Shown here: positions 2,456-54,464 of the stretch, in pieces
Position numbering within the stretch: the first letter of the stretch is position 1
Layout of the letters: each line of letters begins with the position of its first letter
NCBI RefSeq assembly: GCF_036588685.1
Contig: NC_086377.1
Coordinates: 13,702,001 to 13,766,000 of the forward strand
DNA length: 64,000 nt
Source: Mytilus trossulus
Lineage: Eukaryota
Direction: 5' to 3'
Notes under the pieces: generated by a model
What the model was told of the DNA's origin: nothing
Database searches by the model: none
What the model saw: the letters and a program-made list of their open reading frames with translations, nothing else
Position numbers and translations under genes: made by a program

Positions 2456-5400
2456 TATGTGAAGCAGGACAGAGTTGTCTGTCATGTACCGGAATTCAAA
2501 ATCGATCCAATTGTCAACACGTAGAAAATTGTACAAACGATGAGGTATGGATAATAATATGATAATGTGTAATGAACAAATGATATGTCCATGACGATAG
2601 GGTATGGATGATATATCAATGACGATAGGGTATGGATGGTATACCAATGACGATAGGGTATGGATGATATATCAATGACGATAGGGTATGAATAATAACA
2701 TGATAATGTGTTATGAATGAATGATATGTCCATGACGAAGGGTATGGATGATATATCAATGACGATCGGATATGGATGATATATCAATGACGATCGGATA
2801 TGGATGATGTATCAATGACGATAGGGTATGGATGATATATCAATGACGATAGGGTATGAATAATAATATGATAATGTGTAATGAATAAATGATATGTCCA
2901 TGGCGATAGGGTATGGATGATGTATATCAATGACGACAGGGTATGGATGATATATATCTATGACGACGAGATATGGACGATACTGAAATGCGATGTGAAA
3001 TTATGTCTTTAGTACTGGACAGAATAAAACTTTACATATGCAAAGTAATTCTTTATTTAAAACAAAGATAAATTCTGCACATTTTCTTTTAAAAGTGCAA
3101 AGGAGTAAGGCCGATTTTGGCGTCAAATTTCAAGTTCATCAAACGAAAGTTTTTGGACACTTTTTAAAAACTAAAGTGTCTATATCAATTGATGTGATTA
3201 GTTTATTAATGTGAAAGATCTTAACTGATTTAGTCATTAAAAACGCTCTGATTTGAGCTTAAATATGAAAAATCTATCAAATATGTCAAAACACGTCACT
3301 TTTCGGATGGTTTTGTGTCAAAAATGAAAGTGGCCGCATCTGTGTTCATCCTCAACCTTTATATACATTTTGTATTATCATCAATTACAACTTACATTTC
3401 AATATTATGAATCAACACGAGTGCGGCCACTTTCATTTTAGACGGAAACCGTCTAAAAATTAACCAAAATGCTGATTTCAGTAATTTAGCATGACCTAAT
3501 GATGCTAGTACGCGATGTTTGGGCATTGTATTGTAAAAAAACCCAGCTGATATTTATGTAGCAGAAGCATTTGAATTTCCCAAATATAGCTTTTAGATTA
3601 CATTTTCACAGTTTTCTAAAACTGCTATATTTTCGGGCCAAAAGGGGTCTTTCTGAACCTTCTCCTTTAACAAGGACTCATAGGGAAAAATCAATGGTGG
3701 CATTACACCTGGATGGAGACAGAAGTTCTATTTAATCTCAAAATAATTTACAACTTACAAAATCAGATGGTATGAATCTATTTGTATTTAATTGAGAAAT
3801 TGTATTAGTAGTATAAAAAAGGTTTAAAAAATGAATCACTGTACATGAACTTTGAATTGTCTAGTGATAGAGATTAATGTAAAAATTCCAAACAAGTCAA
3901 CTATGGTATTTTCCCCCTATATGTAATAGAGAAATCCATCTATATCGTTCAATTTTAACTGGATGTCAATATGAAATTAAAGACATGTGGTTTGATTGCC
4001 AATGAGACAAATATCCACCTGTGTTCAAATGAAGTACAAATATTGGTACAAGCAATTATAAGTTTTCAAAAATGAGAAAATACCGGAAAGTCGGCTTTTT
4101 CTTGTTTTATTTCAGGTATGTTTTGTACAGAAGCACACCACAGATTCGGGTTCACTTTTGTATGATTTAGGATGTGCATATGAGCAGGTATTTACAATAT
4201 ATACTATAATGATACAAATTCCATTGTCAACTAAGCATTTAATATGGAAAATTTCTTAAATTGTCGTTCACTTATTGTTTTTGCAAATAGTACACACCTT
4301 GAACTGGTTAAGCTGGATGTAACTATTGAAAAATATTATATGAAACATATATACAAACTTTCAGTGATACTGAACATTTAAATTAAATTGCATTTATTGA
4401 TGAATAGAACGAACTCAAAACGCATTGACGCATATGAATAGTATATAATATTTATCAAAGGTACCAGGATTATAATTTAGAACGCCAGACGCGCGTTTCG
4501 TCTACATAAGACGCATCAGTGACGCTCATATCAAAATATTTATAAAGCCTAACAAGTACAAATTTGAAGAGCATTGAGGATCCAAAATTCTAAAAAGTTG
4601 TGCCAAATACGGCTAAGGTAATATATGCCTGGGATAAGAAAATCCTTAGTTTTTTTTCTCGAAAAATTCAATGTTTTGTAAGCAGGAAATTTATAAAAAT
4701 GACCACATTATTGATATTCATGTCAACACCGAAGTGTTGACTACTGGGCTGGTGATACCTTCGGGGACGGAACGTCTACCAGCAGTGGCATCGACCAAGT
4801 GGTGTAAATAGTTATCAAAGGTACCAGGATTATAATTTAGTACGCCAGACGCGCGTTTCGTCTACATAAGAGTCATCAGTGAGGCTCATATCAAAATATT
4901 TATAAAACCAAACAAGTACAAAGTTGAAGAGCATTGAGGATCAAAATTCTAAAAAGTTGTGCCAAATACGGCTAAGGTAATCTATGCCTGGGATAAGAAT
5001 TTTTAATCCTTAGTTTTTTTTCGAAAAATTCAATGTTTTGTAAGCAGGAAATTTATAAAAATGACCACATTATTGATATTCATGTCAACACCGAAGTGTT
5101 GACTACTGGGCTGGTGATACCCTCGGGAGACGAAACGTCCACCAGCAGTGGCATCGACACAGTGGTGTAAATAGTTATCAAAGGTACCAGGATTATAATT
5201 TTTCAGAAATATTTTTTTTTAATATTCAGATGTATTTTTAAATAAATCCAAGTTTCACCAAACAATTACGTATATTTTACCTTCACGCATTTGGTTACGA
5301 ACTTCAGATTATTATCGTAATTATCTTAACCCGTGTTTTTATCAATCCGTGTTATTTTAGTTTTGTAGGTACAATATCGGTGGGACATTTGGTCGTCGAA

Positions 5401-8400
5401 ATGATGCTCATCGTATTTTGTGTACATCATGTTGTAACAAAACAAGAACTTGTAATACTGATTTGAAATGCGAACACGATTATGTTAAAGGTAACTTTTT
5501 AAACTTAGACTCAAAAATCAACTAATCAAAGTACAGGCTTTGCGGTATTAAAACGTTCGAGTACCACATTGACGACTATCGTACTCAGATTCAAAAATGA
5601 ACCAATAACAAAAGCAGATTTGGTCTTCGAGTTCAACTTTTGTAATCCAAATATTGTGTATTGTTTTATTTTATTTATGTATTACCGAAAACCAATGCAT
5701 GTTTCATTCTTGGAAATATTCGTTTCGTCTACAAAAGTCTCATCAGTGACGCTCGAATCAGACACATTTTAAAAGAAAAAATAAAGTACGAAGTTGAAGA
5801 GCATTAAGTACCAAAAATTCCTTAAAGTTTTGCCAAATACAGCTAAGGTAATCTATTTGTGAGGCAGAAAAGCCTTAGTTTAACAAAAAATCAAATTTTG
5901 TTAACAGTTAGTTAAATATAGATTCTTACACTGCAACAAGTGTATTACGAAATTTCTACACTCTAGACAGTTGAATATTATTATTTAAAGCGCGAGGTAT
6001 GCCGAGCTTTTTAAGTACTTCAAATTTAACTGTTGAGAGGAGAAATATCGTAATACACAAGTTACAGTGATGGAATCTGTTTCTCTAATGATTTTTATCC
6101 TCCCTTTTCAATGATTTTGGAAAGTTGTGTATTGTTTGATGTGACGTCATCAGGCATGTCGCCTTTTTCATGACGTCACGATAAGAAAAGTCAGAAGGAA
6201 ACAAGAAAATTTATCGTCACAATTAAAGTTCAACCAATCATTTGCCGAGAACAGATTTTTCCCTAGTGAGGAGAAATATTTTTCTCACACCGGTCTGGAA
6301 ATGTGAAATTAGCACAAAAAATAGAAAATGTATAATTATGAACTAATCAATGATAACTCATGTCAACACAGAAGTGCGGACTAATGGGCTGGTGATACTC
6401 TCGGGGAAATAAATCTCCACCAGCAGTGGCATCGACCCAGTGGTTGTTAAGAAACTCATCATAGATTCCAGGATTGAAATTTTATATTTACGCAAGATGC
6501 GCGTTTCGTCTACAGGCCGGAGACTCATCAGTGACAAATCAAACAATGTTAAAATGTTAAACGGTAGAAATATCGCAATCCACAAAAGATATAATAAGAT
6601 CTTATAAAATAAAAAAAAAAAACTTGGGGTATTAACACACGAAGACGTGCCACTGAAAGATATGCATGATTAGAATCCGTTGCGTTTTTTTGTCTCTTGG
6701 ATAGGAGAAGTGGAAATATAAAGATTCTTCTGGTGGGAATAAATCGTTCAATAATTATCTTTGTTTTGATTTTTTTGTTTGACATACATACGATAAAGAT
6801 CTAATGCTTGTACTTTAATATCAAATTATTCATAGAATACAATCTCAAGCTTTATATTTATTCACATGAGAACTGTCGGTTGAATTTTGAGTTATTATAA
6901 TATAAATTTCTACCGCTTTAAACAGGTTTACCAAGAGAATGTTCTGATATACCAGGACATCATCCAGATGGTGTGTATAAGATATACCCTGATGGAATAT
7001 CAGCAGTTTCTGTATATTGTGATATGCATACCGAAAACGGAAAATGGACGGTAAATTAACATTCTATTTTATTATATAATATTGATGGGCTTAAGTTGAG
7101 ACGAATAACATAATATACATACATGAAATGGTATAAGTCCTGTATAACCTCGTGTTATCCGATAGAGAATGTAAAACATTAAGTTGTCACATGTGTATGA
7201 TCGTGTATTTTATGTAGAAATATCACAATCAACATAAGATACAATATGAACATATATATCAGGCCTCAGACAGGTAATATAATGTGGCATATACCATATA
7301 TGAAACATGAATTACACATATACAACGGAACTATCCCTGTCTAATGCATTTGTAGAACCAGGTATTTTCTAAACGTACACACAATGCAGTATATATATGT
7401 AGTGAAATAAAGCACAAAGCACAGCCTAGGCAGTAAGCTAATGCCGAAACACTAAAACATTAACACACGACTACATGCGGTGCTGTTGGTTGTACATGCT
7501 GGGATTGCCTTTCATACCGCTGTAAGCAGCTGGGTATGCACATTCTGCAGGATAATATGAACGGACAGACGTGCTAGGACTTAATGCTTAGCAACATTGT
7601 AGTCCCTCATTTTGACAACATCCACTTGAGTCAATAACCTTGTACATGCAGGACGACAACGCTAGACAAGAAAGGACAAGGATCGTAGCCGAGTACAAAG
7701 AGCAAGAAGCCTTTGGCTTGCCATGTCTTCAAACGGCACCCAATTGGATATGACTGGGACGCCATTTTTAGCCATGGCGTTATCAGTTTATTTTCGATTT
7801 ATGAGTTTGACTGTCCCTCTTGTATCTTTCGCCCCTCTTTTAATGATATTGAGTGATTGGGTGATTTTTTTGTAATTGGTGTAATAAAATAAATTATAGT
7901 AAACCTTAATTTCGTTCCTGGTATGTGTAATAAGCACTATTTCTATGAAAGCAAAATTATAATGTATAAAACCTGCATACGTGACCAAACTTATGTGTTT
8001 ATGGTATATGTTAGCAAAATTGTTACATGATTGTTTAGTCTTTTTCAAGGAATGACTGATTTTTGAATTGAGAAATTTCAATGCAATAAAAATAGGGTTT
8101 AAAAATGCTTAACTTTTGTCCGCGATTTTATCAATGTAACACCAGTATCGTGCGACATTTTTCTGAAGTATATTGCCAGTATTTTAGCAAATATTTGACT
8201 GTCGAATTTTAGAGCCGATATTTCTTTTGATAAATGGTAAATACATTGTAACTCATATGTCAAAAATATGTTCCATTGCTTTTCATTACGGGTTCATGTT
8301 AAACATAAATCAATTATTTACTATTGCAGAGGCGGATTTCAGGGTGGATTAAAAGGGGATCCACCCCCTTATGATTCATTTATGTATTGATATTGTGTTT

Positions 8401-11400: not shown

Positions 11401-13206
11401 AAAAAAAAAATTACAAAGTTAATAGTACACAAGACCCAACATAGAAAACTAAAGACTCAGCAACATGAACCCCACCCACATGTGACACCCTTCGTGCTAC
11501 TCATGTTATTACAAACCCGGTCAACTGTCTAATTTAGTAGGTCACATTTGTAGTTATATATATCATCTGTGAAACGGATATTTCATAACGGTCAACCAAC
11601 TCGTGATAGCATCCGTAACATTTACAAAGGAATGAGTTTAATTTCACCATTAGAAACTTTTGGTTCAATAGCCTTCTTGTAAACCAACTCTCTATCAACA
11701 TGTTGAAGGAAATCATGGTAGAAAATACAGGCCCGAGAATATCATATCAATATGATATTAAATAAATCAGACCTAGAAAAAACAAATTGCATGAGTTCGT
11801 TATCTATCAATATCTGGAATTAATCTAGATTGAAATACACATGGAATGCAGATACATATTATCGAGCAGATGGTCGTAAATTGTTTATTTGAATTATTTT
11901 GTTAATTGGATAATCGTTTAAGTATGCTATGAATCAAATATCAAAACTTGAATCAATTCGGTTAGCATAATTATGAAAGCTTTTGTCCCTTTGAGAAATG
12001 TATATCTAAACTATCCGTTTTTTGTGATTATTCCATATACTATTGATATTTGGCAGGAAACGATGTCATTCACGAGATAACTATTCATACCCGCCATGAA
12101 TTAAGAATTGACATGCACGATTTCGAAGGTCACGCCAAATACGATAAATATGCAATGTTCATGGTTGGGGATGAGAAAGGTGAATATGAGATGACAGTTC
12201 TTGAGTACAGCGGTAATGCAGGTATATTTGTTATCAACTATTTAAATATAACTTATAATTGTATAAAAGAAAATGAATGAATTCAGGAAATAACATTATC
12301 AAACATTTCGTACTAATATGTACGGTTTTTGCATGACCAATAATAGCCGGAAGTCAATGTTGGTATCAGCCTACGATCTCCAATTTTGTTAACCCTGTGT
12401 GATTTTTTTTATTTATCAACTAGAAGCATTTACTGACAATAGCCAAACATTTAGTCCTACAAATAAACAGGGATATGACTTACTTAGTTCAATTTCATGC
12501 GGGGATTGAAAGAAATAACTTTAATTTTAAAGATAAACAAACAAAATAAGCGTGTAAAACATATAGTTTACAGACATCGAAAATATTTTGTGTTTAACAT
12601 ATATTAGGAAATAGAAATTCGATACAGAAAACATTAGAAAATACTGTTTATGAACTTTTGAATCAAGGAACTAGAAACAGAAAACCTGAATCGCTTGAAA
12701 ATAAGGATGTTGCATTTAGAGAATTCATTTTAACACACATCTTTTTGAAGAAAAATACAATCACCAATTTGCAAAAATTAATTTTCAAATTCATTATAAT
12801 AACTTATTAGCTAAGTTTGCTTGGTATCAGCGAACATGATCAACAGTTATTCTTTCCCAGAACCGCACTACGAAGTTATCTGGACACATTATTTTGTCAA
12901 ATAACATCTTATTATTCTACTAAAATCATTGAATTAATGAACGCAAATTAAATTTTAGGAGATTCGATGACATATCATAGTGGTAACCTGTTTTCAGCCT
13001 TTGATAGGGACAATGACAAAGATACCAGGAATTGTGCTACACTATATCATGGAGGCTGGTGGTACAAGCATTGTCATGATGCTAATTTGAATGGACGGTA
13101 TCTTTCGGGAACCTGTCCGTCTGGACAAGGCATTAATTGGCCAGCATGGCATGGCTTGGACTACTCACTTAAATCGGTGAAAATGATGATCAGAACACTA
13201 TATTAA
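2456..13206 (+). CDS. Gene A: secreted three-finger (Ly6/uPAR-like) + fibrinogen C-terminal domain (FReD) lectin; leader exon upstream of the window
   Basis: Exons 2456-2544, 4116-4187, 5361-5490, 6926-7050, 8540-8636, 12057-12221 and 12959-13206 all have AG/GT borders and compatible phases, giving one open frame: [10 protein letters not shown]...[12 protein letters not shown]...PRECSD...YCDM...WTVIQRR..GSVDF.RNW..YK.GFG...GEYWLGN...DRDND...GGWWY..CH.ANLNG...MMIR. AATAAA at 13355. Confidence 0.92.
2560..2985. repeat. 28-bp minisatellite (caatgacgatagggtatggatgatatat) directly after the 2544 splice donor
   Basis: About 14 degenerate to perfect 28-mers. Colinear with the 28-bp arrays in the same intron of gene B. 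Confidence 0.9.
3100..3670. mobile_element. Putative non-autonomous DNA transposon (Kolobok-like ends AGG...CCT-TTAA)
   Basis: Left end aaaggagtaagg and right end ccttctcctttaa form degenerate inverted termini; no ORF. Confidence 0.4.
4452..5201 (-). mobile_element. Retrozyme-like tandem repeat, ~2.1 units of 360-363 bp, each full unit with a type I hammerhead motif
   Basis: Unit starts (ttatcaaaggtaccaggattataattt) at 4452, 4812 and 5175. The minus strand near 4482-4525 and 4842-4885 reads stemI-CUGAUG(A/C)-stemII-GAAAC-GCGC-GUC-stemI'. Each copy carries a core or stem mutation. Confidence 0.85.
5721..6535 (-). mobile_element. Diverged retrozyme-like unit with two degenerate hammerhead motifs, interrupted by a palindromic element at ~5920-6330
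   Basis: gtttcgtctac...ctcatcagtgac occurs at 5722 and 6503. The rest of the unit (gaagagcatt, gctaaggtaatct, tgtcaacac, ctggtgatac...caccagcagtggcatcgacccagtgg) matches 4452-5201. Confidence 0.75.
5929..6069. repeat. Long imperfect palindrome (hairpin end of a non-autonomous element)
   Basis: cactgcaacaagtgtattacgaaatttct pairs with agaaatatcgtaatacacaagttacagtg around a central gcgcgaggtatgccgagc. Confidence 0.7.
7479..7760 (+). mobile_element. Decayed Tc1/mariner transposase fragment
   Basis: Translation across stops and frameshifts gives ...ILQDNMNGQ...IVVPHFDN...[18 protein letters not shown]...PIGYDWD, matching the Tc1 DDNARPH...NPIExxWD region. Confidence 0.75.
11330..11720 (-). mobile_element. 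Penelope-like retroelement 3' fragment
   Basis: The minus-strand peptide [39 protein letters not shown] resembles the C-terminal part of bivalve Penelope-like RT ORFs (recognised from memory). It ends in the common aaaagagggg.gaaagatacc repeat also seen at ~7765, 14280, 18485 and 29742. Confidence 0.6.
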
Positions 13207-13508: not shown

Positions 13509-13579
13509 GTGCACATCAAAAACTAAAACTAACAATAATGTTAACCATGATAAGTATGTTCATCACATCTTTAATCAGG

Positions 13580-30416: not shown

Positions 30417-33400
30417 ATGACTTTGTCATTTAACGATATAGTTTTGGCTTGTTTTGTGTTTGGATGTTGCATTTATGTAAACCGTAAGTCTTTTATTTGA
30501 GAATTGAATGCTTCTTTTTGTAACCTTATTGGGGTGTAAAAGCGTTGACCGAAGTTCATTTTGGATGACGCGCAGAAGCGCTTCATTCTAAAAATGTACG
30601 CACGGTCAACGCTTTTGCAACCCTATGAAGTTACAAAAAGATGCATTCAATACTTATAATTACATTTTTCAGCTATGATCATGAAAACACGAGTATATTT
30701 TTTTTATTTAATTCACCTGTGCACTTTTTTGTGGAACCACGTCTTATCATGAATGATATGTTTTATATTGAGTGACGCAATTGCTTAAAGAATAACACGT
30801 GGTGTGCAGTTAGCCAATTAGAATAAAGTATTATAATGAAACATACATCTAATGTTATTATTAAAAAAAAAACAATATTATGTCCATATCTCCTTCATTT
30901 GTCCTTTTCCCTATTTAATATTGACCAAAATAGTTGACTTGTCACACGTGTTTTTTTTTATTGTCGTCAACGACATCACGGTTGGTTCAGCTTACAATTT
31001 TTAAGGAATCTGAATTTTGTTATGTTATTCAGTCTGTCGTTTTCTGTGTAGAATGTTCTTGTTGTTTTGTTATTATGTTGTAAGCTTTTCTTTGACATGC
31101 CATTTTAATGGTATCTTTGCCATTGTACACGAGTTTCAAAACTTTCTGGTTTCTGTATGCATTGATCTGTATTTTTAAATGTGTTTTTATTATCATTCAG
31201 GTTAAAAAATTATGGGTTTGCTCCGAGACTCTTATTGACAGCTTTCACATATCATTAGTAGGATTCATCCGTTACAAACTTTTCTTCGATATCTTTATAA
31301 TTTAAAAGTTACAGCTCTCTCATGACTTTTTAAATTTGTATACAAATTTGCTAATTTCATTATGATCTCATGCTGGAATGTACGATATTTTTTATTATAA
31401 CTCGTGCTTGGCGAAAACATTGTTAGAATGATCTCATATTTGGTCTCCTTTATTGGTTCTATCTTGTCATGTGGCTAGTTTCGAGGTATATAGAAATGAC
31501 AATGTGCACTATTTGCAGTTATCACCTCATTATTTCAGTATGTGGGCAGACTTGTTTGTCATGTACCGGAGTAGAAACCCGATCCGACTGTCAGCACGTA
31601 ACAACTTGTTCAAACGATGAGGTATGTATAATATGACGATGGTTAATTGTTGATTTAGCAATGACGATAGAGTATGGTGGTTGATATGGCAATGGTAATT
31701 AGGTATGGATAACATGTCAATGAAGATGAGGTATGAATGATATGTTAATGAAAATACGGGAATGAATGATACTATTAGTTACAAAGTGTGCTAGTGACCT
31801 AAAACGGTATATATGGGGTTAGTAAATTCCATATGGGTTTAGAGCGAATGTATAGGAGGTAAAATAAATGTCAATGACGAAGGATGTGAATATGTCTATG
31901 ACGATTATGTTTGGATAACTTGTCAAGACGAGTCGATACGGATGATATCTAATAGAGAATGATTGATATATCAATGACGATGAGGTATGGAAGATATGTA
32001 AGTAACGAAAGGTGTGAATGAAGATGAAGTATGAATGACATGTCAACGACGAGTCGATAAGATGATGTTTTGGTATAGATGAAATGTAAATGATTTTTTT
32101 GTATAGATGAAATGTAAATGATGTTTTGGTATAGATGAAATGTAAATGATGTTTTGGTATAGATGATATGTAAATGATGTTTTGGTATAGGTTATATGTC
32201 TATGATGTTTTGGTATATATGATATGTAAATGATGTTTTGGTATGGATGATATGTAAATGGTGTTTTGGTATAGGTGATACGTAAATGATGTTTTGGTAT
32301 AGATGTTATGTAAATGATAATTTGGTATAGATGATATATAAATGATGTTTTGGTAAAGGTGATACGTAAAAGATGTTTTACTATAGGTGATATGTAAATG
32401 ATTTTTTTGGTATAGATGATATGTAAATGATGCTTTGGTATCATAGATGATATGTAAATGATGTTTTTGTATAGATGATATGTAAATGATGTTTTGGTTT
32501 AGATGATATGTAAATGATGTTTTGGTATAGGTGATATGTATATAATGTTTTGGTATATATGATATGTAAATGATGTTTTGGTATATATGATATGTAAATG
32601 AAGTTTTGGTATAGATGATATGTAAATGATGTTTTGGTATAGGTGATACGTAAATGATGTTTTGGTATAGATGATATGTAAACGATGTTTTGGTATCATA
32701 TATGATATGTAAATGATGTTTTGGTATATATGATATGCAAATAATGTTTTGGTATATATGATATGTAAATGATGTTTTGGTATATATGATATGTAAATGA
32801 TGTTTTGGTATAGATGATATGTAAATGATGTTTTGGTATCATAGATGATGTGTAAATGATGTTTTTGTATCATAGATGATATGTAAATGATGTTTTGGTA
32901 TCATAGATGATATGTAAATGATGTTTTGGTATCACAGATAATATGTAAATGATGTTTTGGTATCATAGATGATATGTAAACGATGTTTTGGTATCATATA
33001 TGATATGTAAATGATGTTTTGGTATCATAGATGATATGTAAATGATGTTTTGGTATCATAGATGATATGTAAACGATGTTTTGGTATCATAAATGATATG
33101 TAAATGATGTTTTGGTATCATAGATGATATGTAAACGATGTTTGGTATCATAGATGATATGTAAACGATGTTTTGGTATCATATATGATAAGTAAACGAT
33201 GTTTTGGTATATATGATAAGTAAACGATGTTTTGGTATATATGATATGTAAACGATGTTTTGGTATATATGATATGTTAACGATGTTTTGGTATCATAGA
33301 TGATATGAAAACGATGTTTTGGTATCATAGATGATATGTAAATGATGTTTTGGTATCATAGATGATATGTAAATGATGTTTTGGTATCATAGATGATATG

Positions 33401-39400: not shown

Positions 39401-42400
39401 CAATCACCGTATTGCGTTTTTTTTCACGTTTTCTATTTATTATGAATTATTTCAGGTATGTTTTGTGCAAAAACAGACAACAGAATCTGGTTCAGTTTTG
39501 TATGATTTAGGATGTGCATATGAGCAGGTATTTACAAAATACAAGATGTGTACTAAATATTCTGGACTGATGTAAAATTCGTTTTCATATCAGCAGTTTT
39601 TCTTATCTCTTTAACGGATTTTTACCTTTAAATACACATTTTTTAATATGCAGATGCAGGTCAACCATGATTTAATGCATCGTGATAAAATATCATCAAA
39701 ATCGAAAATAATGCATTTTGATTCTTACATCAATGAATCTTCTGTTTATTGTATCGCCTTATCCAACAATTTGTCAGTTTTGTAGACATAGCGTTGGCGG
39801 GATTTTAGGACGTCGAAGTGAAGGACATCACGTGTCTTGTACATCTTGTTGTAACGATACTTCAACTTGTAACATTGGTTTGAAATGTGAAAGTGATCAT
39901 CATGGAACAGGTAAAAGACAATCCGTCTTGACCGATTTATTCGTAGTAAAATATGTATTCGATGTTATATCAATATCACTGACATCCAACCAATCGATAT
40001 GCTTCTATCGTCTCCTCGATGCATGTTCACGTTGTGTAATGCTCGCCATGAGTGCGCAATGTCAATGGATCAAACTAAATAAATAAACTTGGTATATGCT
40101 CTTTTTTGGTAAGCACGCTGCATTTCGGAATTATCATGTGGTCCGATAAAGTGGCATATTTTCCCTGTTTAATACAAAGCAAGGTTGCTGTTCATGTTAC
40201 TTATACATGTTATCGTTCATAATTTGCGTTACATTTGTCATTAATTTGGTCAATAAATCGCAATATTGCAAAAATTTCAAAATGAAGATATCCTTTGAAA
40301 AGTGAGGAAATAACATGAAAATCTATCTACAGATCACGAAGATGTAAATAAATACTTCAGGTTGATGAAACTAGCATAATATATAATTTCTTTAAATAGA
40401 AAATACATGTTTTTTTTGTAAAGGTTATATATTTAAAGACGGATTAAACAAATTCGATGCAACTTTTATAGCATTATATTTCTTTACAATGTATATGAAT
40501 GCTTATATGTTTCGTACTGAATTTTGATTGTGTATGTACATTTTTTTTCAAAACAGGTTCCACCATGCCACGTGAATGTTCTGATATACAAGGACAGCAT
40601 CCTGATGGTGTTTATAAGATATACCCGGATGGAATGTCAGCAGTTTTTGTCTTTTGTGATATGCATACTGACAATGGAAAATGGACGGTAAATTTCAATT
40701 TATCATGTTTATTATGATCATAAAAACTAAAAATGATAACCAAATCCAAAACAATATCCCACTGATGCAAAACACGGAAAAACTATCCAGCATGTAAAAC
40801 AAAACTCCAGAAAATTTTCATTTGTATATCTTTCATGTTCTAGTAGCCTAATGTTCCAATCCTTTTGAAATATATTTATATTTCATATGTAAACTATGCA
40901 TCAATTGTGTGTTTCTTACGTGATCAATACAATTACAGACATTAAAATTATTGGTTTATCTTGAAGTATATCATATTTAAAAAGATAACCTTCATATAAA
41001 ACTAAAACAAATTAGTAAAATTCGATACTTTGATATGTCATCACGATAAACGTCATAGATTAAAACATTCGATTTAAACGTATTGCTTAAACATAATTAA
41101 GCCTTCTATATAGTCTGAAAATTTTGATAGTTACCATGTTTTCTGAATAAACAAAGTAGTTATGTAATTTACTGATGGCACTAATATGTATTTTGACATT
41201 CCCTCAGCAAAGATTTGGCTAATACATTTTGATTTTTGATTGCTTTCGATAAACTCAAATTCAAAATAGTTCCATCTCTTTTTTATCCGGATACATTCGT
41301 TCCATATGATATCAACCAACTTGCAACAGCGGATTTAAAGAGGATAGGGCGGGAGCCTCCCCTATTGAGCTTCATTTGTGATAAATGCATAGACATTTTA
41401 AAAGTTACAATCCAAACGTTGGCTTTCCAGGCCCCCTTTTCAAAATCCTGAATAAGCATATTTGTATCGACATCCTGACACCTCTACCAATAAATGCTTT
41501 GATTTACTAGAATAATTAGACTGTTGGTGCATGTATATAACCACCAACATACATAACCTTTTTATTGTGTTAGGTTATTCAAAGACGTATAAACGGATCG
41601 GTGAACTTTGAACAGAATTGGAAGACGTACAAAGAGGGCTTCGGTTATGCAAACGGTGAATATTGGTTAGGTAGGTTCTCTTTTATACTTCTTTCATTTG
41701 TAACACATAGTCAGATAAATGGCTATATAGATTTCATAACTAAGTCTTTTATACAGAGTATAGACGCTAATTATTGTGGACCAAATAAAGGCAACAGTAG
41801 TGTACCGCTAATCCAAAGTCATAAATAGATATAGACAAAACAAATTAGGTTTACAAACTAAATCCGAGGGAAACACACCAACCTTAAGAGAAAAAACAAA
41901 GGAACAACAAAAACACTGAAGTGAACAAAAACAAACGAGTACGCCTCACACACAGAAATGAAATATTAGATAACAACTGCCATTTTCATGACTTGGTAAA
42001 GGACATTTTAAGAAAAAGATGGTTGGTTGAACCTGTTTGTTTTGCCTTGCACATTTATGGCAATATTAAATATAACACTAAAATGACACCATAGCATGAC
42101 ACCATAGCATGACAGTAATACAGTAACAATATATGAAGGAACATTAAGAATTCGAACAAAATCGATCAAAACCATCGCACGTTTACTTCAGTAAAGTCTG
42201 AACAGCCAACCAACCTAGCAATCCCATATATTTCTTCTGCAATTAATTTTTAAAATTTTTATATACTAGATACGGACTATTATTTATAAAATATGTAACA
42301 CCTAACTGAACAGTTGTTTCATTGGCACATCTTCTTTTTTATTTATAATTCATGTTGACGACGGAATGTACATCATGTATGACCCTACGTTTAAAGGTTG

Positions 42401-43820
42401 TAAATTTATTGGTTGTATTTAACGTCCTAACACATCTGGAGTATTTTGCGGTGACAATTAAAAAAAAATTAACAACACTTCTTCAATATGTGCAATTATA
42501 TTCATCCCATTATATGCTTTTGTTTCATACACTTACTATTTCAGGCAATGATATAATACATGAAATAACCGTTCATAACCGACATGAATTAAGGATTGAC
42601 ATGGGTGACTTTGACGGTATCACTAAATACGCTAAATATACATTATTCAGTGTTGGGGATGAGACTAGTGAATACGAGTTGATGGTACTGGGATACACTG
42701 GAAATGCAGGTATATGTTAGCTCCGTTGTGTCCTTTGTTACATTCACATTACTTTATAACGTGTAACAGTACTTTTCTATCCCAAATTCCTGTAACTGTT
42801 TTGATGTTATATATGTTATTCTCATCGGAATTTGTCTAATGCTTAGTCCGTTTCTGTGTGTGTTACATTTTAATGTTGTGTCGTTGTTCTACGCTTATAT
42901 TTAATGCGTTTCCCTCAGTTTTAGTTTCTTACCCCGATTTTGTTTTTGTCCATGGATTTACGGGTTTTGACCAGAGGTATACTGTTGTTGCCTTTATTTA
43001 GCAACAACTTAAATATAATCTACAACAATAACATCCATGGACAATGAAAAGAAACGGCGCCTATGTTGATATTATTTCTTCATGTTAAAATCACAATGAA
43101 GCCTCTTGGGACGTTTGATAAAGAAACCCTAATGTGCAGTATGATACAGAGCTAAATAGGAAGTGAACTTACTACGATTAGCTTCACTGCAGACATTGAT
43201 ATGAATAACTCAAATCTTTAACAAATGTGTAAAACATATATAAATCGAAAAGGAATCTTATTAAAGGGTATTTAAAAAAAATCATTATATAATCACGAAA
43301 TTTATTTACAGATAATCTTTATAAAGAATGAACAAGAAATTGAACTTTGTAGTATCTGTGAAAACATTAGTCAATGTTTATGTTAAATCTAGAGACACTG
43401 TATGTAATACCTTCAAAATAATAGTCAAATAATCAAAATGTGGGAATTAATGGAAGAGCTGGTAATATCTAAATCTGGAAAACTGTTTTGTCAAATAACA
43501 TCTCCCTTCTCTATTTTATTTTATTTCAATCCAATTTATAAATTGATAGGGTAAAATTCAATTAAATTTCAGGAGACTCGATGGCTTATCATGATGGTAT
43601 GCTGTTTTCAACTTTTGATCGGGACAATGATAAGGATGTCAATAACTGTGCCAAGGCATGTCATGGAGGTTGGTGGTTCAAAGCTTGTCATCATGCTAAC
43701 CTAAACGGCCGTTACCTTTCGGGAACTAGTCCATATGCAGATGGAATAAATTGGTATGCATGGCATGGATTCTACTACTCTCTTAAATCCGTGAAAATGA
43801 TGATTAGAAAACTCCATTAA
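30417..43820 (+). CDS. Gene B: intact secreted three-finger (Ly6/uPAR-like) + FReD lectin, 331 aa
   Basis: Exons 30417-30483 (signal peptide [23 protein letters not shown], then CG|Q), 31539-31621, 39456-39527, 39778-39910, 40557-40687, 41574-41670, 42545-42709 and 43573-43820. All introns are GT/AG, the 996-nt frame is open, and the exon structure matches genes A and C. Confidence 0.93.
30503..30651. repeat. ~150-bp imperfect palindrome in gene B intron 1
   Basis: attgaatgcttctttttgtaac...aaaagcgttgaccg pairs with cggtcaacgctttt...gttacaaaaagatgcattcaat. Confidence 0.8.
32040..36535. repeat. 28/31-bp satellite (aaatgatgttttggtat[cat]agatgatatgt) in gene B intron 2
   Basis: About 4.5 kb of homogeneous monomers, mixing forms with and without the CAT insertion. 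Confidence 0.97.
36800..38880. repeat. 28-bp satellite (caatgaggatggtgtatggattatttgc) with higher-order blocks, gene B intron 2
   Basis: About 2.1 kb. Diagnostic variants recur at 392-bp and 560-bp spacing. Confidence 0.97.
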
Positions 43821-44985: not shown

Positions 44986-45069
44986 TTCACAAAAGTGAAG
45001 CTTTCGGTGGGCATGTGTTACCTTTCCACGTCAGTTTTAATCTAGCGGCGTACTACAGTACATGATATA

Positions 45070-45904: not shown

Positions 45905-46705
45905 ATATCATCGTAAAAACTATCGGATAAACTTTATAAGTTACTTTGGTACATGTATGAGCATGAAAGTTGTAATTTTAAGTGGTTTAATTATGTAAAA
46001 TCTGTGTTTAATGATTGTGGCTTTTGTGAACTATATAATTTTCCGGAGCAAGTTGATTATAATTATAATTATATTAAAATTAATGTAAGGCAGCGTCTCC
46101 AGGACCAGTTTATTCAAAAATGGTTCTCAGATATAAACAATTCATCAAGGGGGGAATTTTATCTACACTTTAAAGAAGAGTTTTGCTTGGAACCATATCT
46201 GTTAAAATTAAGACGTGGTCATAGAGTAAACATATGTAAATTAAGGGTATGTAATACAAAGTTTCCCATCGAAACAGGAAGATGGAGAAATGTACCACGA
46301 AATGAAAGGATTTGTCCACTCTGTAAAGCTGGTCTTGGAGATGTATACCACTATATATGTAAATGTACCAACTGTGAAGTTAAGGATTTAAGGGGGAAGT
46401 TCATACCTCCATATTATTTAAAATATCCAAATGAAAAAAAAGTACTTGGCATGCTTAAAAATAGTAAAAGTAATGTGCTGTCTAAGCTGTCAATTTTTAT
46501 TCAAAAGGTAGAAAAGATGCTTGTCTAATTTAAAACTGTAATAAACACAAACTTATTTTTGAAGATGTATAATTTAAAAATGTATTCTGTTTGTATTATG
46601 AACTATGTTGTAATTAATATTGTGTATATAAATATGCTCCTGTTACGCAGTCTTCTGCGGCTGAGTGTTCTCTAAAAAAACTAAAAACTAAACTAAAACA
46701 AAAAA
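45905..46705 (+). mobile_element. 5'-truncated LINE ORF2 C-terminus with (ctaaaa)n tail, in gene C intron 1
   Basis: ORF 45953-46528 has QRLQDQFIQKW...FPIETGRW...RICPLC...DVYHYICKC, the same region as the 23479-24801 element. Confidence 0.88.
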
Positions 46706-48663
46706 TGTCAAAAAGCTTAAAGTGCACTGTTATTTGAACAGATATATTCCATGGCAATATGCACACCGTATTGCCGTCGTCGGAAGTAGGTTTTGTATCA
46801 GCTCGACTGCGTCCGTCATAATTTTCTTGGCCTCTATGAAAGGGAATTATTTAATATTTGGTCTCCAACTTTTAATGATGTATTGTAGCGAGTCCGCAAT
46901 TTATACATCTCTTATGTATCCACATTGTTTGTCGATAGCTTTTTGCAGTTATATCATCATTATTTCAGTATGTGGACAGATTTGTTTGTCATGTACCGGA
47001 GTAGAAACCTGATCCGATTGCCAACACGTTACAACTTGTACAAATGATGAGGTATGCATAATATAGCTTATGACAAAATAATTGAACTTGTCTGAATGAA
47101 AAAGAAATACAAATTATGCGCTGCTTGAATTTTATTTGCTGGATCGAAAAACAACTATGAGACAGGGCAACTTTCATCTGGATATAAAAAAAAACACAAG
47201 GAGATGTAGTATGATTGTCAATGGAACAAATATCCACAAGACTTCAAATGAAGTGAATGTAAGCAACTATAACTTAACTACCGAAAAACTTTCAACAGGA
47301 GAAAATCCATACCGTATCATCAGCTTTGTCATGTTTTCTATTACTTCAGGTATGTTTTGTCCAGAAGCACACCACAGAGTCTGGTTCAGTTTTGTATGAT
47401 TTAGGATGTGCGTATGAACAGGTATCTATAAAATACAAAATGTATATAAAAGAATCTGGACAAATGAAAAATTCATTCTCAAATTAGTATAACGGTATGA
47501 CATTACAATGCTTGCAAGGAGGTTATTGTTCACTTACTTACGGCGAATTATGCTCGATATTACGGATTTTGATGAAAAACGTGAACACCTACAATGCTTT
47601 GAACTACATCAAGCTATCCAAAGTCTTATATTAAGCTTTTACACTCACAGAGATACAGGCAATTAAGATAAAATTGTCAAATCATCTATAAATGTATTGA
47701 ATAAACTTTAAAAACATCCAAAAGTTACAAATATATTATTTTTGATATTCAGATGCAGTTTAACTACTTCTTACTTCATACATTTAAAAGAAAAAGAAAA
47801 ATTTCGCCCAATTACGTATACCTTGCTTTAATACATTCGGATTCTTAACATACCTTTTATTATTCAATCCATGGTAGTATTTTTAACACACATCTTTGTT
47901 AAGTTTTGCAGACACAGTATTGGAGGGATATTTGGAAGTCGAAGTGAAGGACATCACGTGACTTGTGAATCATGTTGTAATAACACAAGAACTTGTAATA
48001 TTGATTTGAATTGTGAAAGCGATCATCATGTAATAGGTAAATCTCACAAACCTTTGAGTACTCGGACTGATACAAATTATCTAATTTAATTAGTGGTTTT
48101 GCATTCATCAAAAGTTTGACTACGATTTCCGTACTCAGGCAGAAAATCATCCAATCAAAATACTAGAATTGATTAAATTACTATAACATCATATATATTT
48201 CAATGAATAAAAATATGTTAGATTTCAAAAGTATACCTGTTTTTTTGGTACTGTCAATATTGTTTATACAATTTAAACAGAGAAAAGATAAAAAGAGGAT
48301 AGAGGCATAGTTCAATGACATTGTGTCTTCATCAAATTGTCACTCGCATATCAGAGACAAACTAGTCACTGAATCCTGAAACTAAGCATACACGTATTTG
48401 TAAGCGAATTGTTTTTAAATATGAACTTATACATTCTACTGATAGTGATGTCTTTTGATCGCCTTTTAAGTGAAGCTATATAGTTTAATTGATAATACTT
48501 TTGTAAATTAAATTATCCATGAAATACAAAAAAATCTTAAATTGTCCGCTAATAAATTTTGAAAATTAAAATGAAACTAAATGTTTTAACTCTCTCAGAC
48601 AAAGATGACTTTCGATGGATTTGCTTTTCGAAGAGATTTTCGGTACCAGGACTATAATTTTGT

Positions 48664-48707
48664 ACGCCAGACACGCGTTTCGTCTACATAAGACTCATCA
48701 GTGGCGC
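48664..48707 (-). ncRNA. Type I hammerhead ribozyme (intact core) in a retrozyme fragment (~48640-48810)
   Basis: GCGCCA-CUGAUGA-GUC uuaugua GAC-GAAAC-gcgu-GUC^UGGCGU; stems I and II pair fully. Confidence 0.8.
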
Positions 48708-50425
48708 TCATATCAAAATATCTATAAAGCCAAACAAGTACAAAGTTGAAGAGCATTGAGGATCTAAAATTCCAAAAAGTTTTGACAAATACGGATAAGG
48801 AAATATATGACAACTCGTTCAGGTTTTAGGCATCCTTGTCTTTCAAATAAATGGCTTTGGTGAGGGTAAAACCAGAAAAGCGCTTCTTGGCATTACATTT
48901 TTAGAGTATCTTTTTCACATTTTTTGTACATGTCCAATTTTTAACATATACTTATTATTTACACAATTATTAAAAAAATAAATTATTCAGCTTAATTTGT
49001 GCTGATTTTGTACATTTCTGCCGGTTTAAACAGGGTCCACGTTGCCACGTGAATGTTCTGATATACAAGGACAGCATCCTGATGGTGTGTATAAGATATA
49101 TCCAGATGGAATATCAGCAGTTCCTGTGTTTTGTGATATGCATACCGAAAATGAAAAATGGACGGTAAATGTATACTCAATAATTACAAACAACACAGAC
49201 TATGATAGACTGACAATGAATATTTGTACAAAATAAAGTTTCAAAATAACAAGCTTCTAAACACTGTTATAAATTGATAATATATAACTTAAAAAGCATA
49301 ACAAATGTAGGTCCGTGTGCTTATTTTTGAGATATAAGCCATTGAAAATTTGGCGAGGAAAAAAATTCTCTAGACTTTTCGTACATTAAGCATTTGCACC
49401 CTTTTTCTAAATAAAATATATGAAAAAATAACCAAGATTTTAAACCATATTGTAATAACATTATGAAAATTAATTGGGAAAGTATTTAACGACACTACAT
49501 GGATAAAACCAGAGAATTCCAGATAGCTTGCAAACATCTGTAAGTGTGACAATTAGTTATTTTATTTCTGAGTCAAATTTTACCAATGCAATTTTAAAAA
49601 TTCATATTCTCCGTTCATTTGATTTATCTTGAAGAAGAGTCGAGATAACTTGTATTGCCTAAGCTGAAATAAATTGTAGGCACCATAATTACTACAATTT
49701 TGTAGACATTAAATCATGTAACATCAATTAATGTTTACCTTTATAATTGTTAGGTTATACAAAGACGTTTAAACGGATCGGTGAACTTTGAACAGAATTG
49801 GGATACGTACAAAGAGGGTTTCGGTTATCCAAACGGCGAATATTGGTTAGGTATATTTTGAATGAATAATATTGCATTGGTTAGACAGAATTAGTATGTA
49901 TTTCTTTCCTTGTACGACATATTCAGTTATCATGTGTTGTAGATTTCATCCCTTTTGCACAAGGGAACGGTCTATTTATGTAAGTTAAGCTAGCAATGGT
50001 TAATATTACATCGAATGCTATCAAACATGTACTCAATTTTTATTTTGAATGACGTTTCCGGAGTACCTGAGATTCTCCCGTTTTTTTAGTGGGCTAAGTA
50101 TTGCTCAATCTAGTTTTCTATATTGTGAGTCTGAATGCCCTCTTGGTATATTTTGTTTTTCTTTTACAGTCGACGTTAACGGGACATTTGAAATGTTTAA
50201 TTTGATCATCAAAAACGTATTGCATTAGCATATGGATAACATAACTGTATTTAAAGAGTTGCCCCCGTTAATTTTGGATTTGACGGTTGCAAATATTCGT
50301 TTGATGGGTCTGCTTTGCGCCGCATGTAAAATTGCATTTGTGACCGCCAAATCGCTAGTTGGCGATGAATAAATCTACAAATACATCTCTGTTATTTCTT
50401 CAGTTTAAGGCTTATGCTAGGTATG

Positions 50426-50668
50426 CTTATTATTTACACAATTATTAAAAAAATAAATTATTCAGCTTAATTTGTGCTGATTTTGTACATTTCTGCCGGT
50501 TTAAACAGGGTCCACGTTGCCACGTGAATGTTCTGATATACAAGGACAGCATCCTGATGGTGTGTATAAGATATATCCAGATGGAATATCAGCAGTTCCT
50601 GTGTTTTGTGATATGCATACCGAAAATGAAAAATGGACGGTAAATGTATACTCAATAATTACAAACAA
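50426..50668 (+). repeat. Exact 243-bp copy of gene C exon 5 with intron flanks (source 48951-49193), between 21-bp direct repeats
   Basis: Identical sequence at offset 1475. aaggcttatgctaggtatgct occurs at 50407-50427 and 50667-50687. Confidence 0.93.
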
Positions 50669-53600
50669 GGCTTATGCTAGGTATGCTCGTTGCCTTTATT
50701 TAGCTGTCATATCGACAGAATATCACATACTTCTACTACAATAGTCAGCTTTGAAATTTTAGTCATAGGAAACAATACGAAGGTGTGCCAAAATGTATTC
50801 AAATAAATGATACAAGTCTTACAGAAAGATGTGGTTTTTAAAGATTTTTTTTTTTATAACCTTTATAAGTTTTGATTAAAATAAGTAATTCTATTTCAAA
50901 ATATGTCTTGTACCTTCGACTATACTATTATACTGTTCCAAGCATACACCTGTACAAAAAAAAAATATCAAATCCAACAGAATACTCCAAAAACCTATTT
51001 TTTATATAATCCTTCCGATGTTTATTTTCAAAATTTTCAGGCATTAAGCTTATTTCCTGAAATCTGATGATGATTATTCATTCTATTGCCAAACATAATT
51101 TTAGGCAATAAGTAAACTCTGGAATTTATGCATATTGGGTAATTTTTTCTTGATATAGAGTCGTTTCTTAATAATATTTCTAATTCTACATTTATGAACA
51201 TACATTCATTTGACAGATCTTCGAATTTAGTAAGTTTATTTAGTAATTTGCATTTGAAAAACAGAATTAACTCATACTTTTTTTCTTGTTTGTGTGGTAT
51301 TACCAAGTATCAAAAAGACTTAAAAAATGTAATTGTATCAAATTGAAAAAGAATAATTCTGTAGAATAATAATAATTATATTTCTTTAAAAATTTGTACA
51401 CTTCATTAGACGAGCTGGTTTGAACTGGTCAAAAGTAGACCAAATTAAGATATTATTTTTTTTATCACATCATTTTTCTTTATTTTATTGGATACGTAAA
51501 TTATCTTTGTTTATAGTTCCACAATTTTTGATAACAAAATGATTTTCTAACACTAATTTCTATCAAGTTTTTATATTTCTAAAATATTATTTGATGCACT
51601 TAAATATAAATAACAAATTTTACTAGGTAATTTATTTCTGGTCTCTTGTGGAGATTTGTTATATTGGCAATCATGCCACATCTTTGTTTTTTATATTTAG
51701 GATGACACTGGGCTCTGTACTTTTGCATCGTTAAAATCGGTGAAACTCGAGTTTGTTCTTCTGCTCATTTTCAAACGTAGGTTATTTTTTGCAGTAATAA
51801 AATAAAATAGTTGAAGTATTCAGTATTTATATGAAAGATGCACGATATTTTCCTATGATCTTTTAAGTACGAAACCGTGACGTTTCGAATTCAGGTCCCT
51901 CAAAACATAAAATGATTTTACCGATTACATATTTAATTTCAATTATTTACAATTCTAATATAAAACGTAGTCATATTTTTTTACTTATATTTTGTTTCAA
52001 AAAGTTTAAATCTACAATTATAATATAAACATTATTTATAACTGTTTATTTAAAACTAATAATTATTTTCTAATAATTAATTAAAATTTTCGGTTGAATT
52101 TGATACAATATATATTTTTTTTCATTTGCTATTTTTTTTACGCCAATACTTAGGACATCCCAGCTATTAAAATCCTCTGATAACTTCGATATGCAGCATG
52201 TTGAGAAATGTCGTAATTCGATCCTAACTACTAATATGTCATCATTTCTGTCCTAAAAATATCTCACAAGACTAATCTTGGGACAGTGTCGATAAACAAG
52301 CCACAGTTTTGATAATGTTATGTATGTTATTTACTCGCATTTACATTTTAGGTAATAAGCTTAATGCCTGCACACATTTTTCAGGATATAAGCTTAAATC
52401 CTAGGAGTTAATACTAATGCATAACATCATTTAGGCAATGGACTTACTGCCTAGGCGTTAGCTTATTGCATAGGATTTAAGCTTAATGCCTAATTTCACT
52501 TATTGCCGCTAACATATATTATAACGCAATTTCCAGAAACTTCCAATCAAATTGTGAACAACTCCATTTTTATTTTTTGATTTCTACAATACTTTTAACC
52601 AGAAAATCAACCTTTACGGTTTACGGTTAGTTATATATCAATTGAGGTTGATAAACGTCTTTTGTCAGAGTGATAACATTTCTTTTTTGACATCAATTTT
52701 CATAAATATTTACACATACCACCAATTATTTGAGATTCTTCATACATAATTTATGATATATTTTATTAGGAAATAATATTATTCATGAGCTAACCGTCCA
52801 TAACCGCCATGAACTGAGAATTGACATGGAAGATTTTGAAGGTCACACCAAATACGCTAAATATTCATTATTTAGTGTTGGGGACGAGGCAAGTGAATAC
52901 GAGATGACAGTGCTTGGATACAGTGGTGATGCAGGTATTTATATCGCTAACAAATCTTATTTATAATTTAAAATAAATAAAACTCTTGCAATCAGTGTGT
53001 ATTTAGCAGTGACATGACTTATACTATGCTTGCTTTTGTTGCATTAATGCAAATAAATGACATAAATGCTGACATTGAACTTATACAAACATATCAAGAA
53101 ACTAGACTAAAGTATAAACAAATCGAGAAATTATTTACAATATTACAATTTAGTACACATTTTCCCTATGAAATTATCTTTCTAATTCTAATGGAAAATA
53201 CGAGTTTTTATCCAAATTTCACGATCCACTGAACATAGAAAATGGAACTTTTCCGCTATAGGTTAAAGGTCAATTAAGGAAGTTTCAGGTAACGTCTAAC
53301 CAATTTAAAACTTAGTTCACATGTTTCCTATGATATTATCTGTTTAATTTTAACTATAATGATAGTGCGAGTTGGCAATGCTTGTACTATGGGCACATTC
53401 GAGTTACAACATAGACATAGTTTGCAGAAGTCATATGAGGCATATCCTGTTGTAATATTTGGTATATTCACATACCAAATGATCTTTAACTTCATAATTG
53501 ATTGGTATTACAACTTTTTGATTTAAGTATCCAGTGTCATATGTGTATGTCCATGGATAGGAGTCTTCAGTCAAATGTTGCCATATGTTGGTGTTTGCAA

Positions 53601-54464
53601 TCATTGTTTATTGTGGTATTACGATCAGCCTGTCGTGTTTCGCCTTGACTTATTTCACATTTTTAATCCGTTTTGTTTTTATCAATTTACTATATACAGT
53701 ATTACAATTTTAATTGTGATCTGGAATTGATTTTAGCAGAAGTTTTTTTTCACATTGGAAATAAATCCAGATTTGATTGCTTTTATTATAATAAATCAAT
53801 TATAAATTCTAATTTTAGGAGACTCGTTGTCACATCATGATGCTATGCTGTTTACTACGTTTGATAGAGACAACGACAAGAGTTCTGCTAACTGTGCTAA
53901 GGTATACCACGGAGGCTGGTGGTACTTAAATTGTCATATTGCTAACCTGAATGGACGTTATCTTTCTGGAACCAGTCCATACGGAGAGGGGATCAATTGG
54001 TATACATGGCATGGCTTCCATTACTCTCTTAAATCAGTGAAAATGATGATTAGAAACTACATTAAAGATTCATACTATCATATTTTGTTCTGTCAAATAC
54101 ATTTCTTATTGCATTGTCATTTGTCTACTACTATATTATGGTCCTCTAGATGTTGTTTGGTTTTTATTCGGTCGACATGTCGTTGTTGCATGTCATAGAC
54201 GTCTTTTATTCATGAATTCAAAATGTCTTGATGCTAAGAAAAATATAACTCGTACTATTTCCAAACAAATACAAATAAGTCATAGAAGATATAAGTAATT
54301 ATACCACACTTTACTGATTAAATCAATGCATATCTGTATTTTTGTGTTAGCTGTTTACATAACAAATGTTTAATGTATAATCAATTAAACCCTTACCCTA
54401 ACCCTAATTCGTATCTTGGGAAAAACAAAATTGTAAAACACTTACGTCTTATGATCTCATCTAT

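Follow-up and report, generated by a model that had tools for sequence, protein, structure and literature searches.

A tandem gene cluster in Mytilus trossulus with probable fusions of a divergent 12-cysteine three-finger domain to a fibrinogen-related domain

We analysed a stretch of 64,000 nucleotides (the window) from the 1.30-Gb genome of Mytilus trossulus (C5:13,702,001-13,766,000; AT-rich, with a GC content of ~0.32). The window carries a tandem cluster of three paralogues, here called genes A, B and C, all on the + strand. These genes very probably belong to a Mytilus-restricted family whose members combine a signal peptide, a divergent 12-Cys domain of the LU (Ly6/uPAR, three-finger) superfamily and a fibrinogen-related domain (FReD), with gene B looking intact, gene A missing a recognisable signal exon and gene C decaying. 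All three follow one plan, in which three short LU exons encoding the 12-Cys domain are followed by a linker of ~10 residues and four FReD exons. The exons are listed below by their position in the window, with identities and matches to database proteins where these were found.

2456..2544, + strand: gene A LU exon 1 (Cys 1-5), starting in phase 1 and ending in phase 0; 100% match to XP_063436189.1 (P0165)
4116..4187, + strand: gene A LU exon 2 (C-x17-C)
5361..5490, + strand: gene A LU exon 3 (finger 3, CxxCC-x5-CN-x4-C), ending in phase 1; 97.7% identity to the M. galloprovincialis orthologue P0047
6926..7050, + strand: gene A FReD exon 1; 100% to P0165
8540..8636, + strand: gene A FReD exon 2
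12057..12221, + strand: gene A FReD exon 3
12959..13206, + strand: gene A FReD exon 4 with stop codon; 100% to P0165
30417..30483, + strand: gene B signal-peptide exon (22 codons and 1 base, GTAAGT donor); similar to the N-terminal end of P0160, an M. galloprovincialis orthologue
31539..31621, + strand: gene B LU exon 1
39456..39527, + strand: gene B LU exon 2
39778..39910, + strand: gene B LU exon 3
40557..40687, + strand: gene B FReD exon 1; Pfam Fibrinogen_C, E 2.6e-7
41574..41670, + strand: gene B FReD exon 2
42545..42709, + strand: gene B FReD exon 3; Pfam Fibrinogen_C, E 2.7e-12
43573..43820, + strand: gene B FReD exon 4 with stop codon; Pfam Fibrinogen_C, 101 bits
45636..45696, + strand: gene C signal-peptide exon; 16 of 20 residues identical to the P0160 N-terminus
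46969..47051, + strand: gene C LU exon 1, interrupted by an in-frame TGA at 47010-47012
47350..47421, + strand: gene C LU exon 2
47904..48036, + strand: gene C LU exon 3; sub-threshold Pfam CD59 match, E 0.011
49034..49164, + strand: gene C FReD exon 1, regularly placed copy
49754..49850, + strand: gene C FReD exon 2
50505..50645, + strand: second copy of gene C FReD exon 1, downstream of FReD exon 2; ends in phase 0 where the next exon expects phase 1
52770..52934, + strand: gene C FReD exon 3
53819..54198, + strand: gene C FReD exon 4, its frame extended by ~47 residues through a 1-nt deletion

An initial annotation of this DNA had read a 12-Cys pattern from three short exons in each paralogue, and the pattern is present as it was described. 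The LU exons of genes A-C encode CxxC-x8-C-x5-C-x5-C-x17-C-x5-C-x18-CxxCC-x5-CN-x4-C, and every one of them is flanked by an acceptor AG and a donor GT. The LU module is a symmetric cassette, entered and left in phase 1, whose exon phases fit the four FReD exons in all three genes; the final G of LU exon 3 and the first two bases of FReD exon 1 together form a Gly codon. The exons are thus found in A, B and C alike, but LU exon 1 of gene C contains an in-frame TGA. Across the LU exons, the ratio of nonsynonymous to synonymous substitution (dN/dS, Nei-Gojobori, summed per exon) comes to 0.13-0.30, similar to the 0.17-0.20 of the FReD exons. Values this low show that the LU exons are coding and under constraint. 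All 12 Cys are kept in the LU domains of the three genes. Their spacing, 2-8-5-5-17-5-(17 to 20)-2-0-5-5, does not change across 29 copies from databases, apart from the length of the third-finger loop. Because the 12 Cys are kept, their spacing is invariant and dN/dS is low, the pattern is not a product of chance.

The window exons were searched singly, and the full-length evidence comes from database proteins returned by the searches, including the RefSeq model of gene A. This model, XP_063436189.1 (P0165, M. trossulus), is built of exon pieces that match the window with 100% identity. It connects LU exons 1-3 with the FReD exons, and its junctions are the ones derived here. LU and FReD are also joined in the A-type protein XP_076081602.1 of M. 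galloprovincialis, with 98% identity for LU exon 3 together with FReD exon 1, and likewise in the B/C-type protein XP_076081603.1 of that species; the N-termini of these two proteins resemble the predicted signal exons of genes B and C. Complete proteins of 328 and 331 aa (P0035 and P0052), running from signal peptide through LU domain to FReD, are encoded on Logan contigs of just 1181 and 1160 nt. Because the full protein fits within 1160-1181 nt, these contigs are intronless, and most simply they are transcript assemblies of paralogues. Gene models, paralogue contigs and phases together give strong, though indirect, support to the predicted splicing of LU to FReD exons in genes A-C, as the initial annotation had proposed. 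No transmembrane or glycosylphosphatidylinositol (GPI) signals were found in the gene products, which look soluble, again as had been supposed.

Four M. galloprovincialis RefSeq entries (XP_076081601-604; P0163, P0047, P0160 and P0161) are listed as isoforms X1-X4 of a single gene. In them, signal and LU exons of both the A type and the B/C type are combined with differing downstream exons. This mixture could stem from alternative tandem LU exon sets, from read-through over tandem paralogues or from an annotation artefact.

Members of the LU superfamily are recognised by a CxxC start and a CC-x(4-5)-CN end with an invariant Asn, and both were found in the three window copies; in the family alignment, C-C-N and C-N are invariant columns. 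The spacing from CC to CN is x5 in the window domains against the usual x4, and there is one additional Cys pair over the canonical 10-Cys domain, in agreement with the initial count. We concluded that this extra pair consists of the Cys that lies two residues ahead of CC and the one four residues past CN. The window copies have a further Cys immediately before CxxC (VC or LC followed by GQ, as in …C/GQxCLSC), which is Gly or Tyr in the relatives P0038 and P0012. As a 13th structural Cys it was rejected, being unconserved in relatives and located at the predicted end of the signal peptide, of which it is probably the last residue; the mature domain therefore has 12 Cys. Outside the Cys framework, the best-conserved positions lie in finger 3, with the motif G-[KR]-R-x(1-2)-[ED]-G-H-H. 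A CCNx[ST] sequon occurs in 20 of the 29 database copies.

Predicted models place this domain among the three-finger folds. We used an AlphaFold2 model of the tandem-LU homologue P0010 (XP_071138523.1), which has a mean predicted local distance difference test (pLDDT) score of 63 and scores of 77-85 in the first two fingers of each domain. Foldseek searches with this model, of the kind that the initial annotation had recommended for gene B, matched only LU/three-finger structures. All top matches were LU proteins, among them uPAR (1.2e-4) and GPIHBP1 (template-modelling (TM) score 0.68; root-mean-square deviation (rmsd) 3.2 over 86 columns), and the matches also included TEX101, C4.4A, PSCA, LYPD6B, TGF-beta receptor II and snake toxins. 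VIA-align, which is independent of Foldseek, gave 38 top rows that all belong to the three-finger superfamily, led by GPIHBP1 (Z 9.4, rmsd 2.8, 79 of 83 residues aligned) and including LYPD6B (Z 7.6), PSCA (Z 7.5) and CD59 (Z 6.9, rmsd 2.3); the first unrelated chain appeared at Z 3.3. A second model, that of the gene A protein in the ESM Atlas (pLDDT 0.78), matched clusters over residues 31-127 at TM scores of 0.60-0.78, these being uPAR/Ly6, Toxin_TOLIP, PSCA (0.63/0.60), LYPD6B and muscarinic toxin. Language-model features point to the same clan with low scores and serve as a lead only.

A profile comparison connects the window-type domain to LU domains that Pfam recognises. M. galloprovincialis fibrinogen-related proteins 10 and 12 (MgFREP10 and MgFREP12; AJQ21506.1 and AJQ21508.1, UniProt A0A0C5PT78 and A0A0C5PW19) are public entries with three-finger Pfam matches, and the first LU domain (LU1) of MgFREP12 passes the Toxin_TOLIP threshold (33.9 bits, cut-off 21.2). 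A hidden Markov model (HMM) built from 44 window-type domains gave the four LU domains in these two proteins scores of 31-41 bits; the best of 2000 shuffled sequences reached 9.7 bits. From the fold searches on two independent predicted models and this profile link, we concluded that the Cys-rich domain is a divergent LU/three-finger domain, as had been annotated.

The FReD of genes A-C is, to judge by its closest relatives, an ordinary domain of the MFAP4/FIBCD1/tachylectin-5A/ficolin type. Single gene B exons match Pfam PF00147 Fibrinogen_C with 101, 47 and 31 bits (cut-off 22) and orthologues reach 235-248 bits; the solved structures nearest to the last exon alone are those of MFAP4, FIBCD1, tenascin-R, tachylectin-5A and ficolin-2 (E 1e-22 to 1e-28). 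Genes A, B and C all have the motifs DRDND, NCA...C-H and GRY. By analogy with the TL5A and FIBCD1 structures, DRDND may mark a Ca-site region and Cys-Cys-His/Tyr an acetyl-binding pocket. Four residues past the first Cys of this putative pocket, gene B has a Cys where A and C have Tyr (CAKAC at 43650-43670 in FReD exon 4, against CATLY in gene A and CAKVY in gene C). This swap may have changed the binding pocket or added an unpaired Cys.

The three copies differ in their state. Gene B alone looks fully intact from ATG to stop, its eight exons totalling 996 nt, or 331 codons and the stop. Gene C is a decaying copy with three lesions: a TGA at 47010-47012 within LU exon 1, where gene B has CGA; an extra copy of FReD exon 1 at ~50505-50645, whose inclusion would shift the frame; and a 1-nt deletion immediately before the ancestral stop, after which the frame runs on to 54198. 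Its decay may be recent, as the low dN/dS between B and C suggests. In gene A the LU and FReD exons are intact. The signal peptide that had been annotated ahead of every LU domain has an exon in B and C, but for gene A none is recognisable inside the window. A search of the genome DNA with the gene B signal exon matched that exon alone, leaving the gene A signal exon unlocated, and the RefSeq model XP_063436189.1 starts inside a 32-nt minisatellite (~1639-1729) with no convincing signal peptide. The true first exon of gene A either lies upstream of the window or has been lost.

This minisatellite, with a unit of ~32 nt, fills positions 1-2300 of the window upstream of gene A (notably ~1639-1729), and about one copy only of the unit is found at genes B and C, near 31351-31437. 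Expansion of the array may have displaced or destroyed the gene A signal exon. Intron 2 of gene B (7.8 kb) houses two further large minisatellites, at 32062-36535 (31-nt unit, ~151 copies) and 36797-38881 (28-nt unit, ~75 copies), with a GC skew of up to 0.73. The many open reading frames (ORFs) of 80-140 aa on the - strand at 32043-36487 were rejected as genes, being minisatellite artefacts.

The family is large in this genome. LU exon 3 has 54 matches, hence at least 54 copies, about ten of them as tandem pairs and the whole concentrated on C5. We sampled 20 loci on the + strand, at 10 kb each. One LU exon set leads directly into four FReD exons in 11 of the 20; two have two LU domains, EB-like repeats and a FReD; two have an LU domain and EB repeats that run beyond the fetched 10 kb; and the remaining five show LU only within 8 kb. 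With the three genes of the window, the genome thus contains at least 14 LU-FReD loci. At one of the sampled loci, LU exon 3 of a gene with tandem LU domains, EB repeats and a FReD (L019:1980-2099; G000:C5:45163199-45163297) carries an in-frame TAA, and this copy is another decaying family member.

Beyond this genome, the LU exon 3 profile found 25 matches in 1.84 billion representative proteins; those with a named source all come from Mytilus. The LU pattern occurs together with the FReD motif in 37 retrieved database proteins, the named ones again all Mytilus, and non-Mytilus matches to the full-length query cover the FReD only. A word-based homologue search limited to the LU region of P0003 returned two proteins. 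The LU-FReD family is therefore apparently confined to Mytilus, as far as these searches indicate. Database relatives with other arrangements join two LU domains to EB repeats and a FReD (P0007, P0040) or to EGF and a C-type lectin domain (XP_076111663/4). In P0025 (VDI58105.1) a Cys-rich stretch that looks ShKT-like precedes the first LU domain, at residues ~60-100. The LU-FReD fusion is thus a constrained multigene family of at least 14 loci, and its LU module is also carried by EB-repeat-FReD and EGF-C-type-lectin proteins.

Bivalve innate immunity relies on very large and diversified lectin families. FReD lectins bind acetylated glycans in a Ca-dependent manner and act as opsonins in molluscs, and LU domains are protein-binding modules. 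By analogy with these two groups, we tentatively suggest that the LU-FReD proteins would be secreted into haemolymph or mucus and that their FReD would bind acetylated or other glycans, depending on Ca. The LU domain would stand in for the collagen, coiled-coil or immunoglobulin-superfamily (IgSF) stalk of other FReD lectins, and would serve as an adaptor that binds a protein, either a haemocyte receptor or another humoral factor. Its likeliest contact surface would be the long third finger with the G-[KR]-R-x(1-2)-[ED]-G-H-H motif. We offer this functional reading as a whole as a possibility in which we have limited confidence. If it is correct, the LU-FReD proteins are candidate adaptors that couple glycan recognition to effector cells, a step that is little understood in bivalves.

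The same architecture would also accommodate an LU domain with no external partner, acting as a structural cap or self-association module in place of the N-terminal oligomerisation region. Other FReD lectins need their N-terminal region to multimerise, the LU domain occupies exactly that position at ~10 residues from the FReD, and relatives carry tandem LU copies. However, each of the 12 Cys would have its partner inside the domain, leaving no free Cys for interchain bonds; LU domains are generally monomeric binding modules, and the conserved finger-3 motif indicates a specific contact. We consider this alternative unlikely. Also compatible with the architecture, and distinctly less probable still in our estimate, is an LU domain that is itself an active effector brought to glycan-marked targets by the FReD, either blocking pore formers as CD59 does or acting on membranes or channels like a toxin. 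The Cys spacing, which is very close to that of CD59, the presence of CD59 (Z 6.9) and of snake toxins among the structural matches and the sub-threshold Pfam CD59 match on one exon would fit such a role. Yet the structural matches are spread evenly over the three-finger subfamilies with none favoured, and there is no sequence similarity to the functional loops of CD59 or of the toxins.

The adaptor reading, which we prefer, can be extended into a more specific and improbable proposal. In Mytilus the recruitment of effectors might have passed from the collagen or coiled-coil stalk of a lectin to the LU domain, with G-[KR]-R-x-[ED]-G-H-H docking onto, or being cleaved by, a haemocyte receptor or humoral protease. 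LU-FReD, LU-EB-FReD and LU-EGF-C-type-lectin proteins would then form one lineage-specific pathway, produced by shuffling the phase 1-1 LU module onto different lectin heads.

Several observations weigh against the interpretation of genes A-C as members of a secreted LU-FReD lectin family. At the curated thresholds of Pfam clan CL0117 (UPAR_LY6, Toxin_TOLIP, CD59, Activin_recp) there was no match to a window-type domain. The best Pfam score on the window exons is CD59 with 15.8 bits on one exon (cut-off 33.9), UPAR_LY6 reached E 0.038 in 2 of 17 relatives, and P0003, P0047 and P0046 gave no LU-clan match in a Pfam scan, in which full-length relatives yield Fibrinogen_C alone. Sequence searches of the PDB with P0010 and with a 15-sequence exon-3 profile returned chance matches only; reelin EGF and ribosomal protein eL37 were dismissed as such, with E at least 0.3. 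In the AlphaFold2 model of P0010 the third finger is poor (pLDDT <50), and a full-length model of P0003 from a 13-sequence alignment reached a pLDDT of 41.5, with its FReD also poor, and was excluded from the fold search. The three-finger fold is read from predicted models, and a canonical disulfide connectivity is putative. Two of the three copies, A and C, are incomplete or damaged. The expression of genes A-C in this animal, their secretion, glycan binding and immune induction and the partner of the LU domain are all predictions, and an effector or receptor-binding role of the finger domain is one that we infer.

The unmet Pfam thresholds, the blank PDB sequence searches and the moderate confidence of the models would be expected if the Cys-rich module were a convergent disulfide-rich beta domain, not homologous to LU and drawn to the three-finger fold by the predictors. 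This we regard as very improbable. UPAR_LY6, one of the profiles named in the initial annotation, stayed below threshold in Pfam, but with scores of 31-41 bits the family HMM links the module to LU domains that Pfam recognises, shuffled sequences staying at or below 9.7; the module has the CxxC start and invariant CC...CN end, and two different predictors give one fold with a clean gap to unrelated folds. It is hardly credible that the Cys-rich and FReD exons belong to separate transcripts and that their fusion is a gene-prediction artefact, given compatible phases, collinear order in three paralogues and 11 further loci, the full fusion encoded by paralogues on intronless contigs of 1160-1181 nt and the agreement of RefSeq models from three species.

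Other elements share the window with the LU-FReD genes. An ORF of 370 aa on the - strand at 17241-18353 is mucin-like: it contains a CxC motif and ~15 repeats rich in Thr (…TTTPELDLTGISSTD…), and a transmembrane segment lies at its C-terminus. Two ORF fragments, at 23764-24801 (- strand) and 45953-46528 (+ strand), are similar to one another (…NWLRLTVSRKLKDQFEQNW… and …INVRQRLQDQFIQKW…). In both, a CxxC…HxxxC motif comes after the quoted sequence, and they look like C-terminal parts of a non-LTR retrotransposon ORF2. The second of them sits within gene C, after the signal exon and before LU exon 1.

The ficolins, tachylectin-5A, FIBCD1 and MFAP4 share the FReD with the window genes, in which it includes the DRDND region, a putative Ca site, and the Cys-Cys-His region. 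At the N-terminus they have collagen-like, Cys-linked, transmembrane or RGD regions, and none has an LU domain. The window genes do not fall among the ficolins: no collagen Pfam match and no Gly-X-Y run was found, and ~10 residues separate LU from FReD. On the side of the LU domain, the window copies resemble the vertebrate single-domain proteins CD59, GPIHBP1, PSCA, LYPD6B and Lynx: the fold predicted for the window type is theirs (Z 6.9-9.4), both groups open with CxxC and close with CC...CN, and the Cys spacing is close to that of CD59. Unlike the window proteins, however, these vertebrate proteins are GPI-anchored or free small proteins with no lectin fusion and have 10 rather than 12 Cys; sequence identity is only 16-20%.

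The closest recorded proteins are from Mytilus itself, LU-FReD proteins having been deposited in databases since about 2015. MgFREP10 and MgFREP12 have, like the window genes, a signal peptide, LU and a C-terminal FReD; the LU spacing of 2-8-5-5-17-5 in the N-terminal half is the same, their LU1 also has 12 Cys, and homology is supported by the profile scores of 31-41 bits. They differ in having two LU domains, a Thr-rich linker of ~40 residues, a finger 3 of 12 residues and CC-x4-CN, and in being recognised by Pfam. In contrast, the window genes have one LU domain, an 18-residue finger 3 with G[KR]R..GHH, CC-x5-CN and almost no linker, and are invisible to Pfam.

The architecture also appears in a 2026 survey of invertebrate Ly6/uPAR proteins, in which a mollusc three-finger protein with a fibrinogen-like domain is presented as previously unobserved and is given no function (PMC13719153). 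It is one example shown in a figure, and the survey used the profiles of Pfam clan CL0117, which barely detect the window-type domain; the example may therefore be of the FREP10/12 type. The same source likewise lists the combination of three-finger and C1q domains in molluscs as a previously unobserved architecture (PMC13719153). A mollusc cluster named 'hemicentin-1-like' in the ESM Atlas (TSP_1 and C1q, 454 aa) matched the LU model with a TM score of 0.70 over 80 residues; this suggests that LU-TSP1-C1q proteins exist, consistent with the LU-C1q combination listed there. In view of the public MgFREP10/12 entries and of this survey, the novelty first claimed for the architecture was overstated. 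The accompanying statement that no functional description was known agrees with our literature search, which found no functional study of LU-FReD proteins.

Taken together, the window genes are a single-LU, Pfam-invisible subfamily of a recorded architecture, annotated merely as 'MFAP4-like'. Because standard domain annotation misses their LU domain, Pfam-based surveys undercount the family. The value of the present analysis lies in better annotation and a testable hypothesis; with the architecture already on record, it describes no new kind of system. Among mollusc FReD proteins, the gastropod FREPs of Biomphalaria glabrata also have an N-terminal accessory binding domain, form expanded families and are presumed to act in immune recognition. 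No Ig-family Pfam match was found in any member of the Mytilus family that we scanned, so that these genes do not count as FREPs of the gastropod type. Where the gastropod proteins carry one or two N-terminal IgSF domains, the window genes carry an LU domain.

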